Shown: piece by piece, positions 7,206 to 47,710 of the stretch
Layout of the letters: every line of letters begins with the position of its first letter
Numbering within the stretch: the stretch's first letter is position 1
NCBI RefSeq assembly: GCF_006345805.1
Contig: NW_021832533.1
Location: 1 to 64,000, forward strand
DNA length: 64,000 bases
Direction: 5' to 3'
Origin: Octopus sinensis
Lineage: Eukaryota
Notes under the pieces: model-generated
What the model saw: only the letters and a program-made list of their open reading frames with translations
The model's database searches: none
What the model was told of the DNA's origin: nothing
Made by a program: the position numbers and the translations under genes

Positions 7206-8014
7206 TCAGTTACATTCACTTGAGCAGATCATATTATTGGGGATCGGGTGGTCACAGAAGTTGCAATCTAATGTGAGTATACAAACACACCATATGCTTC
7301 TTCCATAGTGAGGGTTGTCTTTTGATTTTGATTTAATCTTATTTCCGCATTGTTGTCGACTAATCGGATATTTGGTACATTCATCACTGTCGTAATTCTT
7401 ATATGAGAATAACAAAGTATACAGTGTGGGTTGGGACCCGTTTGTGAACATGCACATTTTCTGGTCTTTATAAAAACTACACAGTCAGTAATTTAAAATA
7501 CTAAAGCCTGACAGGACGACTGATTTTTGGCGACTGAAAAATAGTATTTGACGGCATGTGACTTTAATGTTAGAATAAGATTTGTACAGATTTGATAATG
7601 CGGCTAGACGTGCAAAACTATCTACATTGACGTAACGAAGGTTATTACAGTCATACAGATTTCTAATAATTCGAAATATTTAAATATACATATAGAATAA
7701 CTCATTCAACACACCAAATGAGTTCTTTGAAATTCTCTCTAGCGAGTTTCCATTACACTCACTAGTATTAAAGAAATATTGATTACAAGTGTTCTAAATG
7801 TTCTAGATGGGAGAATATTTCTCCATTAGGAAATGTAACGTTTCTCATTATGTTAAGAAAACGCACATATTCCGTCGTAGAATTTTCTCCATTGAAACTA
7901 CAGTTGTTTAAATTAAGTAATCTTTTAAATTAAGCAATTCTTCAAAAACCTTTCTGTTAAGTCACAGTCTTTTTGTATCACTAAATGAATAAAAAGTAGT
8001 ACAAATGGAAGCAT
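7206..8014 (-). CDS. Secreted LRR protein, family copy A (intact; 8 exons, 209 aa)
   Basis: Seven GT-AG introns (28,25,27,26,25,25,23 nt) leave 630 nt: MLPFVLLFIHLVIQKDC...FSHLEHLEHFECNGNSLERISKNSFGVLNELFYINLYDCNNLRYVNVDSFARLAALSNLHMPSN...DCNFCDHPIPNNMICSSECN*; hydrophobic N-terminus, LxxLxxL motifs, NxS/T sequons. Confidence 0.85.
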
Positions 8015-8654
8015 TTTAATTAATGCTGATATTTTATTGTCAATAACTCAGTGGTTAGACATTGAATTGATATATTTATTAAACTGTTTTTTGTTAATAT
8101 ATATTACTTTGCACGTATATTTTGAGGCGTATTGAAAACAATATTTTTTAATCCTGGATGTACAAATATTTCACCTCTCGAGCATTTTGGACAAATAACT
8201 GGACACTTCTATCAAATCCGTAAATAAATCACAATTATTTATAAATTAAACAAAAATTGGCTAACTTGATACTATTTATAAGATATTTGCAAATAAGAAA
8301 ATCTGTGAACTTATATAATGATAAGTCGATGACAAACACATCATATGTATACATCCTCTCTCTAAATCAAAATCTTATAGAAAAGTCAGAAAACTGAATA
8401 AACATTTGAAAAAAACAACGAATGTGGACAAAATAGATATTGCAGCTAAATTAACTGCAATTGAGAGACAAATCCTGGCAAATGTTGAGAATTAACATGA
8501 AGTTTCTCTAATTTCTTTAATAAGAAAGTAAAAAGGAAAGAAATAAAAAAATTAAGAATTGAATTTTGATTCAATACAACCTACTACGTCTTTAAGTAAA
8601 TTTATAGAATTAAAAAATTATTTGCTCATTGTTTTTCAAAATTATTGATTTTAT

Positions 8655-9990
8655 TTGTTTAAACTGACAAAGAAATTACAAGAAAACAAATATGGCCAAT
8701 TTGCAAAGATCGAGTGCATTTTTCTGTTAAAAGTTATAAAAATACAAAAAAAACAAAATATTGATTCCATTTTTAGATTGGTTCAACCCAACCAAATTGA
8801 CAGCCACCATTACGAACATTTTCAATATGGAATTTGAGACACATTCAGTTTTTAAAACTTTGGGATGGAATTTAATTCCTTTACATAAACCAGGAAAGAG
8901 CAAGGGGACGCTAAAAAAACCAAGACCAGTTGAAGACACTAAGAAAAATTCTATCTCTGATAACTCTTAATCGGATATCTTCTGATGTTTGCGATTTTCT
9001 GTCGCCAGGACAGAATGGATTCAGAAGGGGTCGCTCGACTGCAGACACTGTCTGGTCTCATAGATGGATATGTGCTATGTTTCAACGATACAAAAATGAC
9101 TTTAAAATTCTGGGAGTGGACATGTCCAGTGCGTTTGACACTGCCAATAGGAAATCGTTGTTGGACGTTATTTGGAGTTTTCTTGATGAAGATAGCACTA
9201 GGCTCGTCCGTTTCTTACTTTCTAAAACCGAATTAACTGTACGGGTTGGAAACGAGTTATCAAATCCTTTCGGGACAACAATTGGAACACTTTAGGGGGA
9301 CTCTCTATCTTCCGTTCTATTCATAGTATACCTGAGAGATCTCAGAACAAAGTGCGAAGGATCGATGCCGATGGAAATTATATATGCAGACGACATAGAC
9401 TTTGTGTCAGAAAATGATCAGGAACTTGCATCTGTTTTGGAGAAAACTCCGGACGAAATTTCACGTTAATCAACAAAATACTTAACACGTAAGAATCGCA
9501 AGGGAATCGAAAATATTGATGAAAGTTGGAGGAAAAAAAGGAAATTAGGATCATAACTTGGTGATAGTGAGGACATGATGTACCGGAGAGTTTTACCCTC
9601 TGCAATGTACAAGAAAATGCAAAAGATATGGAATCATCAAAAACTTCAAAAAACAAACATCAAGCTAAAGCTGTACAACACATATATAAAACCAGTACTA
9701 ATGTACAACTCGGTTACCTGGGGTGTCATAGAGACAGAGTTACATAAAATGGACACGTTTCACAGAAAACAACTACGCAATCTACTGGGGCCTAGGATGG
9801 CCAAAAAAGATTCCTAACAGAAAATTATACGTTATGACACGATTGCTGCCAATAAGCATCGATATTTAGAATCAAGATGGAGGCTGTTTGGAAACGTACT
9901 TAGGGAAAACTCGATGTGCTGACGACCTTGAAGACCTACGAGTATATGCTCAAAGCAGGATTTCTCAACGTGCGGCACAAATGGGACCTT
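8655..9990 (+). mobile_element. RTE-like LINE, decayed reverse transcriptase
   Basis: QNGFRRGRST, GVDMSSAFD, IYADD, FHRKQLR motifs with stops and frameshifts; (TAA)n-like tail near 9970-9990. Confidence 0.85.
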
Positions 9991-10254
9991 AGCTAATTTA
10001 ACATTTCTTTGGTTATGTGTACGTACTATTAATAATAATAATAATGATTACATACTTAATCAAATTTATATTATTCTGATCATTCAAACTTTTTCATTCT
10101 TAATTAACCATAAATCACATCTCCAATTAATCAATACTATTTAACTGAAAACAAAATCATTTTTGGTTGGTAGATTATCAATGACTTATTATTTCAATAA
10201 GATTCCATAAGTAAACCAAAAAATGAATAATTAATTCGAATAAATTAAGAAAGG

Positions 10255-10890
10255 TCACAATTTCCAGGCATTCCTCATCATCAAATCAAAATAAGAATCG
10301 TGGTCAATCGACGAGCTGACTGATGAATAATAATTCAAAAACTCCTCAAAAGTAACCTAAAAGACACTCACAAACCACCCGACCTTCCCATCCGGATCCT
10401 CAGGCGAATCAAACTGCTTTAAAAACTCAGAAAAACATCTTTCAGTAGACCATTCACCATTTAAATATTTCGGATGTTTTTTTGCACAATAATTTCGTTG
10501 TATGTCTGCAACTGTCACGATTCCGTCCCCTGTGGCATCGAGTTTACTGAAAGCCTTTCTAACCACGCTGATGCGGTTTTCGTTGAGGGGAGGCTTAGGT
10601 ATGATAGCTTAAACTAACTCTTAAGGACAGCAGGAATTCGTCAAATGAAAGACTTCCGGATTTATCCTTGTCAAAAAATGTAAATATTTTTTGTATTTTT
10701 TCATCACAAAAGTTGATATTTTGATCTTTTAAGCCTTTTTTGAATTCTTCAAAATTAAGGGATTTATTCCCATTGTCGTCCATAATTCGAAATAAACTTT
10801 TTTAAACCACAAAAAGCACCGGCCGAATGATTTAATCCCATGATTGCCTCTCGTCATCAATTCTTTCCTTAAACACTCCACCTCGTCCAT
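10255..10890 (-). CDS. CAPSL: Calcyphosin-like EF-hand protein (3 introns: 23, 25, 27 nt; 186 aa)
   Basis: [20 protein letters not shown]..., [46 protein letters not shown]; spliced length 561 nt. Confidence 0.9.
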
Positions 10891-10938
10891 ACAACCAATT
10901 AAATTCAAATTCGTTTATTACAAAAATTAAAACAAAAA

Positions 10939-45619: not shown

Positions 45620-45688
45620 AGGGTTCGGGTTAGGGTTAGCGTTAGGGTTAGCGTTAGGGTTAGGGTTAAGGGTTAGGGTTAGGGTTAG
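45620..45688 (+). repeat. Interstitial telomere-like (GGGTTA)n, about 11 units with variants
   Basis: gggttc gggtta gggtta gcgtta ... read directly. Confidence 0.9.
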
Positions 45689-45696
45689 TCAATATA

Positions 45697-46795
45697 ACAC
45701 ATATTAAACAAACGCCCCTAACTTTACACATATTAAATACAAACGCCCCTAACTTCACACATATTAAATAAACGCCCCTAACTTCACACATATTAAATAA
45801 ACGCCCCTAACTTCACACATATTAAATAAACGCCCCTAACTTCACACATATTAAATAAACGCCCCTAACTTCACACATATTAAATAAACGCCCCTAACTT
45901 TACACATATTAAACAAACGCCCCTAACTTTACACATATTAAACAAACGCCTCTAACTTCACACATATTAAATAAACGCCCCTAACTTTACACATATTAAA
46001 CAAACGCCTCTAACTTCACACATATTAAATAAACGCCCCTAACTTTACACATATTAAACAAACGCCCCTAACTTCACACATATTAAATAAACGCCCCTAA
46101 CTTTACACATATTAAACAAACGCCTCTAACTTCACACATATTAAATAAACGCCCCTAACTTTACACATATTAAATAAACGCCCCTAACTTTACACATATT
46201 AAACAAACGCCCCTAACTTCACACATATTAAACAAACGCCTCTAACTTCACACATATTAAATAAACGCCCCTAACTTCACACATATTAAATAAACGCCCC
46301 TAACTTTACACATATTAAACAAACGCCCCTAACTTCACACATATTAAACAAACGCCTCTAACTTCACACATATTAAATAAACGCCCCTAACTTCACACAT
46401 ATTAAATAAACGCCCTTAACTTTACACATATTAAACAAACGCCCCTAACTTCACACATATTAAACAAACGCCTCTAACTTCACACATATTAAATAAACGC
46501 CCCTAACTTCACACATATTAAATAAACGCCCTTAACTTTACACATATTAAACAAACGCCCCTAACTTCACACATATTAAACAAACGCCTCTAACTTCACA
46601 CATATTAAATAAACGCCTCTAACTTCACACATATTAAATAAACGCCCCTAACTTCACACATATTAAATAAACGCCCTTAACTTTACACATATTAAACAAA
46701 CGCCCCTAACTTCACACATATTAAACAAACGCCTCTAACTTCACACATATTAAATAAACGCCCCTAACTTTACACATATTAAACAAACGCCCCTG
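45697..46795 (+). repeat. 30-bp tandem array, about 36 units
   Basis: Unit CACATATTAAA(C/T)AAACGCC(C/T)CTAACTT(T/C)A; no spacers. Confidence 0.95.
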
Positions 46796-46911
46796 GGGGC
46801 GTTTGTTTTATGTGATCCGTAATATATATTAACAAAAAACAGTTTAATAAATATATCAATTTAATGTCTAACCAATGAGTTATTCACAATAAAATATGAC
46901 CTGAAATTATA

Positions 46912-47710
46912 ATGGTGACACTTGTCCTATTTTTTGTTTGCTTTGTGATACAAAAAGACTGTGACTTAACAGAAGGGTTTTTTAAGAATTGCTTAATTTA
47001 AATTAGGTCTTTGTTTGACTGTAATTACAATACAGAATATGTTGCGGGATGTATAATGCTTTCAATTGTAGATGGCGTTAAATTTCCTAATGGAGAAGTA
47101 TTCTCCAATCTAGAAGATTTGAGAAATTTGTAATCAATATTTCTTTAATATTAGTGAGTGTAATGGAAACTCGCTAGAGAGAATTTCAAAGGACTCATTT
47201 GGTGTGTTGGATAAATTATCCTATATGTATATTTAAATATTTCGAATTATTAGAAATCTGTATGACTGTAATAAACTTCGTTACGTGAATGTAGATAGTT
47301 TTGCACGTCTAGCCGCATTATCACATCTGTACAAATCTTATTCTAACATTAAAGTCACATGCCATCAAAAACCGTCTTTCAGTCGCCAAAAATCAGTCGT
47401 CGTGTCAGGCTTTAGTATTTTAAATTACTGACTGTGTAGTTTTTATAAAGACCAGAAAATGTGCATGTTCAGAAACGGGTCCCAACCCACACTGTATACT
47501 TTGTTATTCTCATATAAGAATTACGACAGTGATGAATAAACCAAAAATCTTATTAGCCGACAACAGTGCGGAAATAAAATTAGATCAAAATCAAGAGACA
47601 ACATTAATCTTTGAAGAAGCATTTGGTGTGTTTGTATACTCACATTAGATTGCAACTTCTGTGACCACCCGATCCCCAATAATATGATCTGCACAAGTGA
47701 ATGTAACTAA
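46912..47710 (+). pseudogene. Secreted LRR family copy D (1-nt deletion in exon 5, otherwise open)
   Basis: Same exon plan; TCAAAACCGTC versus TCAAATACTAT in A and C at about 47366 shifts the frame. Confidence 0.8.

Follow-up and report, generated by a model that had tools for sequence, protein, structure and literature searches.

A mosaic family of small leucine-rich-repeat genes with ultra-short introns on a probable dicyemid contig of an octopus assembly

Accelerated evolution is well known from the crotaline phospholipases A2 and the conotoxins, in which the exons for the mature protein are far less conserved than the introns, the leader and the flanks. Parasites have variant families of their own, among them the schistosome micro-exon genes (MEGs), the BspA-like leucine-rich-repeat (LRR) proteins of trichomonads and Entamoeba, and the trypanosome variant surface glycoproteins (VSGs). 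The Hcr9 genes of tomato are long and intron-poor, encode membrane-anchored LRR proteins, show a ratio of nonsynonymous to synonymous substitution rates (dN/dS) above 1 at the solvent-exposed positions of the xxLxLxx motif, and include pseudogenes and fragments amid the intact genes. These clustered germline LRR genes, Cf-4 and Cf-9 among them, are said to owe a patchwork structure to exchange between paralogues, as Parniske and colleagues reportedly described in 1997. Here we describe a family that can be set beside these systems, found in a 64,000-nt stretch of DNA, the whole of which we call the window (positions 1 to 64,000 of contig NW_021832533.1, forward strand, in the Octopus sinensis assembly GCF_006345805.1). 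We think it quite likely that the window holds part of a clustered germline LRR multigene family of about 60 loci, which evolves by duplication, gene conversion and diversifying selection in the DNA of a dicyemid-type parasite.

An earlier reading of the letters of this stretch, the original prediction, had proposed four mosaic copies of a gene for a small secreted LRR protein. We name the copies by their window positions: A (7206-8014), B (19085-21990), C (40319-41154) and D (46912-47710). Family loci in the assembly carry labels of the form L0nn, and the contig and scaffold labels (such as C9004, C17 and C12462) are distinct from gene copy C.

Structure, size and products of the family

Repeat finding picked out paralogous units of about 1 kb at 7081-8358 (minus strand), 39976-41190 and 46819-47916, which are 88 to 93% identical over 650 to 760 nt. 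Compared by BLASTN, the DNA of A and C is 90.7% identical overall, that of A and D 88.6% and that of C and D 87.6%. An alignment of 30 genomic copies revealed seven short, near-invariant blocks, each bounded by GT and AG. Excising the seven blocks from C yields a single open frame of 218 aa, and complete open reading frames (ORFs) of 202 to 218 aa appear, only after excision of the same seven introns, at 23 of the 30 loci (20 of the 27 distinct sequences).

We then modeled the three intact genes exon by exon, checking the splice models letter for letter against the window sequence. Gene A, on the minus strand at 7206-8014, has exons at 7950-8014, 7787-7921, 7690-7761, 7588-7662, 7502-7561, 7423-7476, 7291-7397 and 7206-7267, and encodes 209 aa ending at a TGA stop. 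Gene C, on the plus strand, has exons at 40319-40383, 40412-40543, 40569-40640, 40668-40742, 40769-40828, 40854-40907, 40933-41039 and 41063-41154, separated by introns at 40384-40411, 40544-40568, 40641-40667, 40743-40768, 40829-40853, 40908-40932 and 41040-41062; it ends at a TAA stop. Gene D, also on the plus strand, encodes 205 aa in exons at 46912-46976, 47007-47129, 47155-47226, 47254-47328, 47355-47414, 47440-47493, 47519-47625 and 47649-47710.

Introns 1 to 7 measure 28 (30 in D), 25, 27, 26, 25, 25 and 23 nt, and every one runs from GT to AG; the longer intron 1 of D results from an acceptor moved by 2 nt, and the exon 2 that follows it is highly divergent. Exons 2 to 6 (123 to 135, 72, 75, 60 and 54 nt) are each a multiple of 3, introns 1 to 6 are all in phase 2, and exon indels among the copies are 3, 6 or 12 nt long. 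Exons 3 and 4 each correspond to one LRR, and the LRRs fall largely one to an exon. The 8-exon plan with 23- to 30-nt introns, the exact coordinates of A, C and D and the complete frames of 205 to 218 aa are confirmed, the exon plan, the intron lengths and the coordinates just as the original prediction had them. It had also remarked that the ORF track is blind to the family, which is so because the longest exon is only 135 nt. A, C and D are real split genes, probably as functional as they look, and are presumably transcribed and spliced.

A CTNAY-like motif lies 6 to 9 nt ahead of the AG in each mini-intron; it reads CTAAC, CTGAC, CTCAT and CTCAC in introns 4, 5, 6 and 7, respectively. Genome-wide, 39 copies share an identical intron 4 and identical bases on either side of it. 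These features suggest that almost every base of the mini-introns is under constraint.

The assembly that we searched comprises 2.72 Gb in 13,516 contigs; the contig that carries the window, C9004, is 291,662 bp long. A DNA search of this assembly gave at least 49 family matches. A 29-nt signature of intron 4, with up to 3 mismatches allowed, found 62 sites, 39 of them exact, and its reversed control found 0. All of these sites lie on small unplaced contigs, nine of them on C9004 alone, and 0 of the 62 on the chromosome-size scaffolds. The four-copy family of the original prediction thus gives way to one of about 60 loci, with several subfamilies and many pseudogenes.

At least three subfamilies can be told apart: I (A, C and D; 85 to 91% identical), II (L016/L017; about 79%) and III (about 76%, including B), with more distant members besides. 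Many loci are truncated or frameshifted, including B, L008, L010, L011, L015, L021 and L027. Identical loci occur on redundant contigs (L018 and L019, L028 and L029, L012 and L013), and small contigs can be duplicated exactly or near-exactly, for example C9004:255917-259815 and C8899:5517-9415. Partial copies are found beside complete genes (L007 to L009, L011 and L040), as fragments of 130 to 250 nt lying 0.4 to 0.6 kb away, some of which cover exons 4 to 6; on C12462, L031 to L033 are units of exons 3 to 7 that lack exons 1 and 2 and form arrays of their own. The partial copies may be donors for gene conversion, or merely decaying duplicates.

Against the Pfam LRR_8 model (PF13855; cut-off, 27 bits), proteins A (32.6) and D (30.3) score above the cut-off, and C (25.5) and one subfamily III member (26.2) fall just below it. 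The best score against the BspA-type model LRR_5 (PF13306; cut-off, 27.7 bits) is 26.6, with the others at 16.8 to 19.6, all below the cut-off, and neither LRRNT (PF01462) nor LRRCT (PF01463) gave any Pfam match even at E<=1. A profile of 17 family members searched against the PDB matched LRR ectodomains over residues ~38 to 126, down to E=8.5e-16, among them those of LRRTM, LGR4/5, LRRC4, LRRC15, variable lymphocyte receptors (VLR-B and VLR-A), repebodies and the Nogo receptor; over residues 127 to 209 the same profile matched no solved structure in the PDB. With LRR positions assigned from the sequence motif, each protein has about five to six repeats, so the earlier figure of about three was an undercount.

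The leader is hydrophobic (Kyte-Doolittle mean of 2.8 to 3.3 over residues 2 to 13), and no further hydrophobic segment follows it, the maximum 19-residue hydropathy past residue 20 being below 1.0. Cysteines 17, 29, 69, 96, 144, 191, 194 and 204 are present in all members and a last one, at 208/209, in most. Only two of them, C17 and C29, lie on the N-cap side. The C-terminal cap is short and typically has four cysteines, spaced C-x2-C-x9-C-x3-4-C; protein C has three, the last being absent. The proteins stop 1 to 15 residues after the last cysteine. All three of A, C and D retain an NGS sequon, and A and C also have an NVT sequon. The hydrophobic leader, LRR core and Cys-rich end of the original prediction are therefore all present in A, C and D. 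These properties fit a soluble, secreted-type protein with a cleavable-type leader, a predicted mature length of about 185 to 200 aa and no membrane anchor.

Exchange between copies and selection on the repeats

The relationships among A, C and D change along the gene. In the 5' flank and exon 1, C and D form a clade (97% support), and approximately unbiased (AU) tests reject the alternatives (p<=0.0004); exon 1 is 94% identical between C and D and 78 to 82% identical between A and either of them. Over intron 1 and exon 2 the tree instead pairs A with C (95%; AU not decisive), and exon 2 is 88% identical between these two, against 66 to 68% between D and either. From intron 2 to exon 4 the pair is A and D (100%), with C and D rejected by AU (p=0.025) and A and C less clearly so (p=0.07; Kishino-Hasegawa test, 0.045); exon 3 is 93% identical between A and D, with C at 75%. 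From intron 4 to the first part of exon 7 (exon 7a), A again pairs with C (99%; AU p<=0.002), and exons 5 and 6 of these two genes are 100% identical. In the rest of exon 7 (exon 7b), identity is 89% for C and D and 87% for A and C. From exon 7b to the 3' flank, A and D are favored (AU p<=4e-5): over intron 7, exon 8 and the 3' flank together, these two are 91 to 100% identical and C stands at 66 to 74% (exon 8, 95% vs 66 to 67%; 3' flank, 91% vs 71 to 74%). In the tree of this 3' end (segment S5), C goes with subfamily II, between subfamily I and L016, with 96 to 100% support, and its exon 8 and 3' flank are of the subfamily II type, 93 to 94% identical to those of L016/L017.

Most of the pairings proposed at the outset survive this analysis, namely C with D in exon 1, A with C in exon 2, A with D in exon 3, A with C in exons 5 and 6, and A with D at the 3' end. 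Others do not. A and B were to group in exon 1, and although both have the "ML" type of leader, they are only 83% identical there, no better than B and C or B and D. The proposed grouping of C with D in the second half of exon 7 is weak, given the 87% for A and C. B and C, the second pair proposed for the 3' end, are only 69 to 81% identical, the true partner of C being subfamily II.

In 4 of the 5 segments, AU tests rejected the alternative sister pairs, and the conflicting segment trees carry 95 to 100% support. In subfamily I, the pairwise homoplasy index (PHI) was 0.274, against 0.360 +/- 0.010 in permutations (p<0.0005); it was also significant in subfamily III and in all copies together. 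The four-gamete test gave a minimum number of recombination events (Rm) of at least 29. Runs of concordant sites, with intron and flank sites included, number 18 for C and D, 13 for A and C and about 60 for A and D; convergent selection on codons is ruled out as their cause because the concordant sites include flank and intron positions. Incongruent segment trees and positive recombination tests are what the original prediction had led us to expect, and, judged from these sequences, the mosaicism among the copies is real and statistically strong.

Five of the seven intervals in which the relationships among A, C and D switch contain an intron. Sites with an intron between them are somewhat more often incompatible than pairs at equal distance within one exon (0.44 vs 0.27, and 0.61 vs 0.44 to 0.50), and pairs inside one exon are also frequently incompatible. 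Exchange thus seems to be favored near the invariant introns without being limited to them. We rejected strict shuffling of exon cassettes, with exchange only at introns, as the trend is modest and incompatibility within exons is also high; of the segmental conversion or shuffling in the original prediction, exchange between copies stands (PHI, trees and AU tests) and its confinement to exon boundaries does not. A lies in the opposite orientation to C and D, and certain of the best donors are on other contigs: exon 1 of C equals that of L004, exon 7b of C that of L007 and the 5' flank of A that of L006. These observations favor gene conversion without crossover.

Pairwise diversity is higher in exons than in introns, at 0.122 vs 0.045 in subfamily I and 0.101 vs 0.020 in subfamily III, so that the introns are 2.5 to 5 times less diverse than the exons; in subfamily III, exon diversity also exceeds that of both flanks (0.04 to 0.05). 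Over the whole coding sequence, dN/dS is 0.77 in subfamily I and 1.68 in subfamily III. We fixed in advance a set of 25 concave codons, comprising LRR positions 2, 3, 5, 7 and 8 (the variable positions of xxLxLxx) in five repeats. At these codons dN/dS is 2.19 (bootstrap, 1.08 to 7.3) in subfamily I and 3.93 (2.3 to 8.7) in subfamily III, compared with 0.59 and 1.29 in the remaining mature protein, and the proportion of nonsynonymous differences (pN) is 0.27 to 0.34, compared with 0.11 in random codon sets (P<0.0002). The columns that are hypervariable empirically coincide with LRR positions 2, 3, 5, 7 and 8, with extra ones in a loop before the C-cap. In alignment numbering they are columns 39-48, 66/68/70, 87-95, 111/115, 134-140, 157-165 and 174-180. 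The splice sites are all invariant, as are the framework Leu, Asn and Phe residues and nearly all of the cysteines. Such a pattern is the classical mark of a binding surface that is diversifying, and we read it as diversifying selection on the predicted concave, ligand-binding face.

Source of the contig and competing explanations

A DHX38/PRP16-like gene next to the family in the window has GT..AG introns of about 24 nt. A second DHX38 orthologue, on the chromosome-size scaffold C17, consists of small exons spread over 13 kb, and compact versions occur on small contigs only. Mollusc-type haemocyanin arrays lie on the large scaffolds C5 and C28. Since DHX38 is present in a long-intron and a compact form, the haemocyanin arrays sit on big scaffolds and 0 of the 62 family loci do, the assembly is a mixture of a mollusc host and, on small unplaced contigs, a tiny-intron organism. 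We infer that the mollusc is a cephalopod.

The window has a GC content of 30 to 47% per 2-kb window (mean, ~36%) and is rich in transposable elements (TEs), with RVT, hAT, Tc1 and Pif1/Helitron-like pieces. Among animals, introns of less than 30 bp are described only in dicyemids and in myxobolid myxozoans. The latter are fish parasites, and Henneguya salminicola, the sole one with a reported GC value, stands at ~29% GC. Dicyemid introns have a published median of 27 bp, and the genome of Dicyema japonicum is 36.7% GC and 49% repeats. Circumstantial as this is, a dicyemid is the best inference for the source of the contig, and quite a likely one. In our literature search, no paper connected dicyemids with LRR families or described dicyemid contigs in an octopus assembly.

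We consider it unlikely that the family belongs instead to the mollusc host or to some other eukaryote, such as a ciliate or an apicomplexan. The contig does sit in the host's published-style assembly, and our COX1 search did not return a parasite mitochondrial minicircle, but the host's DHX38 has kb-scale introns and no family locus maps to a chromosome-size scaffold. A ciliate, suggested by the tiny introns, was rejected on the long standard-code ORFs, which speak against those ciliates that reassign TAA/TAG, and on the metazoan-type TEs (a poly-A retroelement with a target-site duplication [TSD], Tc1/mariner, hAT and a Pif1/Helitron-like piece). The family genes end at TGA or TAA, the mean GC content is close to that of D. 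japonicum, and the intron lengths leave, among animals, only the dicyemids and the myxobolid fish parasites. Alternatively, the copies might be a dead repeat family, either decaying gene copies or a fragment spread by transposons, in which high dN/dS reflects relaxed constraint. The many truncated or frameshifted loci, a whole-gene dN/dS near or above 1 and the TE-rich clusters would fit, yet 20 of the 27 distinct sequences keep complete ORFs across seven introns despite up to 25% nucleotide divergence, exon indels are in frame, and splice sites, framework residues and nearly all cysteines are invariant. The replacements are concentrated at the 25 concave codons, with omega (dN/dS) significantly above 1, whereas neutral decay predicts ~1 everywhere, and the unit is not bounded by terminal repeats or TSDs, its flanks simply diverging. 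We therefore hold a dead family to be quite improbable.

An assembly artefact, in which the mosaics would be chimeric consensus sequences from the collapse of haplotypes or paralogues or from mis-mapped short-read polishing, is very unlikely. Redundant or haplotig contigs with identical loci are present, the window itself holds a near-identical 7-kb direct duplication with its halves 51 kb apart, and A, C and D have no second contig for checking. However, the alternating blocks differ by 7 to 34%, more than mis-polishing could produce; long reads far exceed them in length, and several switches per kb cannot arise by joining contigs; N gaps are absent from the window; mosaics of like kind, in which two leader types are found with several types of exon 3 and exon 8, recur on many independent contigs; the near-identical contig sets L002/L003/L004/L015, L009/L012 and L016/L017 each repeat their own mosaic; and the mosaic copies retain intact ORFs. 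There is just as little chance of programmed or somatic diversification in the manner of VLRs, VSGs or chicken immunoglobulin genes, by which complete genes would be rewritten from neighboring partial copies with the mini-introns as homology joints. Its attraction is that partial copies adjoin complete genes (as exon 3-7-only units on C12462 also show), that nearly invariant introns separate hypervariable exons, that exons 2 to 6 are symmetric phase-2 modules and that incompatible site pairs are somewhat more frequent across introns than within exons. All of the evidence, though, comes from one germline-type assembly, every functional copy is a full gene that has a leader and a promoter-like flank of its own, the number of LRR exons is constant and incompatibility within exons is also high; germline gene conversion with selection accounts for everything observed. 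Very improbable, too, is the specific proposal that the near-invariant 23- to 30-nt introns between same-phase, one-LRR exons are, beyond their constraint by splicing, homology joints for programmed exchange of exon cassettes, with the partial copies as donors. If it were true, a parasite of ~30 cells could vary its secreted binding repertoire from one individual or clone to another, and would have an invertebrate VLR- or VSG-like system of anticipatory or antigenic variation.

We accordingly return to a germline family shaped by gene conversion and selection. Several points weigh against it. A search of the assembly with COX1 for a dicyemid-type cox1 minicircle gave only the host mitochondrial gene and nuclear copies. 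Neither a single sequence nor the 17-member profile found a homologue in a collection of 5.8 billion proteins, so that no cross-species conservation can be called on. No allelic contig for the window region was found in the assembly, which leaves the sequences of A, C and D without confirmation from a second contig (weak host-chromosome matches in that search came from an AT-rich low-complexity stretch and were dismissed). Pairwise dN/dS values are approximate in a recombining family, and part of the homoplasy within exons may be recurrent mutation rather than exchange.

Under the germline reading, copies would arise by tandem and dispersed duplication and die through TE activity. Frequent ectopic gene conversion or recombination would copy tracts of 50 to 350 nt between paralogues, inverted copies and copies on other contigs included, and so produce exon-scale mosaics. 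The x residues of the xxLxLxx strands, which are exposed to solvent, would be under strong diversifying selection, while the framework and the seven mini-introns hardly change. What results would be a repertoire of soluble proteins that bind outside the cell with differing specificities, most plausibly at the interface of parasite and host. That the proteins are aimed at a host, as had been suggested, becomes more plausible because the contig appears to be parasite-type DNA within a mollusc assembly, and we regard the family as a candidate host-interaction repertoire.

Dicyemids are among the simplest animals, and the molecules that they use for life on the cephalopod kidney epithelium are almost uncharacterized; the family offers concrete candidates. 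Its pattern is the one expected for recognition between host and parasite, or possibly of other parasites or of microbes. In tiny-intron genomes, standard ORF and gene callers can overlook whole families. The unplaced contigs of a chromosome-level mollusc assembly seem to contain hundreds of kb of parasite DNA, and probably far more, which can be mined or marked as contaminating. Finally, genes whose exons vary several times more than the introns between them offer a clean natural case for studying constraint on ultra-short introns and conserved islands that may guide gene conversion.

Remaining features of the window and comparison with known systems

The 5' flank of A (8015-8358, minus strand) is conserved and may act as a promoter; some 90 nt before the ATG it has an AT-rich block that resembles a TATA box. 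Inverted repeats I3 and I10 match it to the upstream region of C at 91 to 97%, and its proximal 99 nt are 100% identical to those of L006 on a different contig. The 3' flank of A (7001-7205, minus strand) is shared with D, inverted repeats I1 and I9 matching it to 47711-47916 at 93 to 96%, and carries the family-wide element TTAACTAACCTAATTATT just past the stop. The 5' flank of C (39736-40318, plus strand) is common to the upstream regions of B and D (direct repeats D6, D13, D14 and D20). That of D is split by a 29-bp minisatellite of about 42 copies, placed at 45416-46794 by repeat finding with no strand assigned; the upstream homology picks up again at 44913-45423, and the array ends about 93 to 118 nt before the ATG, where it may affect the promoter of D. 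A short element, TTAACTAACCTAATTATTTATTCTAATATTTC, overlaps or immediately follows the stop codon (window positions 41140-41165, 47700-47725, 7190-7215, 22004-22051 and 48029-48078). It hardly varies in any subfamily, even if the coding 3' ends diverge, and a second copy lies about 220 to 320 nt downstream of D and likewise in L002 to L004. It may serve in regulation or as a signal for 3'-end processing.

Copy B (19085-21990, plus strand) had been taken for an intact 8-exon paralogue and is instead a TE-disrupted pseudogene of the divergent subfamily III, aligning to the family in three short pieces only. Exon 1 lies at 19085-19149; the remnant of exon 2, at 20478-20603, contains an in-frame TAA at 20584-20586; exons 3 to 6 are absent; and a rearranged remnant of exon 7, intron 7 and exon 8 lies at ~21792-21990. 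Intron 1 holds what is probably a 5'-truncated poly-A retroelement of 1.3 kb (19160-20449, plus strand), with a poly-A run and a 10-bp TSD, GTTTTTAAAA, at 19150-19159 and 20450-20459. The ORF in this region (19061-20413) has no Pfam domain, so the class of the insertion was assigned from the poly-A run and the TSD. The place of exon 3 to most of intron 6 is taken by a Tc1/mariner remnant (20622-21791, plus strand; Pfam HTH_Tnp_Tc3_2 at 75.6 bits, HTH_32 and DDE_3), whose right end, ...ACTGTA, meets the last part of intron 6.

A direct duplication of at least 7 kb (1-7016 and 51113-58994) is 95 to 100%, mostly 97 to 100%, identical, and each duplicate holds a complete-looking DHX38/PRP16-like helicase gene. 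The second duplicate is about 1 kb longer and includes a Pif1-helicase (Helitron-like) fragment at 56894-57370; the first begins at the end of the contig, so the duplication may extend further or be an artefact of the assembly. A 97-bp satellite forms 23 copies of 97% identity at the end of the second duplicate (58906-61160) and only 1.9 copies at that of the first (6820-7000), where it abuts the 3' flank of A. On the minus strand at 32217-33404, a 395-aa frame carries nine tandem repeats of 105 nt (35 aa), rich in Ser, Thr and Glu (...TKTDTSQTFTNVPSESETALKSETKE.NEA...), and may encode another secreted or mucin-like repetitive protein from this organism. A non-LTR retrotransposon, whose RVT_1 ORF (41860-43143) lies between genes C and D, occurs in inverted copies at 34572-34902 and 41820-42151 that are 98 to 100% identical, which indicates that TE activity in the cluster is very recent. 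There are three hAT-like transposase ORFs, at 16512-18412 (within the upstream flank of B), 27817-28952 and 61764-63442; the Dimer_Tnp_hAT domain was confirmed in the first only, and the others were assigned by sequence resemblance. Rfam and tRNA scans of the window found nothing.

Turning to known systems, the family has its best profile matches in the metazoan LRR ectodomains of LRRTM, LGR4/5, LRRC4 and the Nogo receptor, which it resembles in its 24-residue repeat, its F-x-x-L-x-x-L pattern and its Asn ladder over residues ~38 to 126. Those, however, belong to large receptors that are conserved, single-copy and canonically capped, whereas the proteins described here stand alone and are multicopy and hypervariable. 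With the parasite variant families it shares lineage-specific expansion and fast evolution, and it has symmetric exons like the MEGs, an LRR scaffold like the BspA-like proteins and mosaics drawn from paralogues and pseudogenes like the VSGs. It differs from the MEGs in that its exons, though symmetric from 2 to 6, are 54 to 135 nt long and not micro-exons of 6 to 36 nt, and from the BspA-like proteins in that the best LRR_5 score stays below the cut-off; nothing points to alternative splicing or to switching of expression sites. As in the toxin families, introns, leader and flanks are much more conserved than the mature exons, and replacement changes outpace silent ones in a multigene family of secreted type; the fold and the biology are different, and here the fast residues make up the predicted binding surface on a repeat scaffold and paralogue exchange is prominent.

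VLRs offer a closer likeness, being small LRR-only proteins of similar size with Cys caps at both ends, concave diversity and mosaic sequences. VLR genes are not complete in the germline and draw somatically on flanking cassettes to become so, in contrast to the 20 of 27 distinct loci here that are complete with leader, LRR exons and stop; the octopus-assembly family also has no canonical LRRNT or LRRCT match, no stalk or hydrophobic tail and a fixed number of LRRs. The loose analogy to VLR and VSG repertoires drawn in the original prediction therefore holds for the outcome, hypervariable concave LRR residues and mosaic copies, and not for the mechanism, the functional copies being complete in the germline with their own leader and flanks and nothing pointing to a somatic or programmed process. 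The Hcr9 genes are like the family in that germline paralogue exchange and a dN/dS above 1 on xxLxLxx are found in both, with pseudogenes and fragments interspersed. They differ without sequence homology between them, the family in the octopus assembly encoding soluble proteins of ~200 aa with five to six LRRs and one-LRR exons, in what is probably an animal parasite. Set against all of these, the family appears to be a new, lineage-specific and previously unannotated LRR family that pairs one-LRR exons with ultra-short, ultra-conserved introns.

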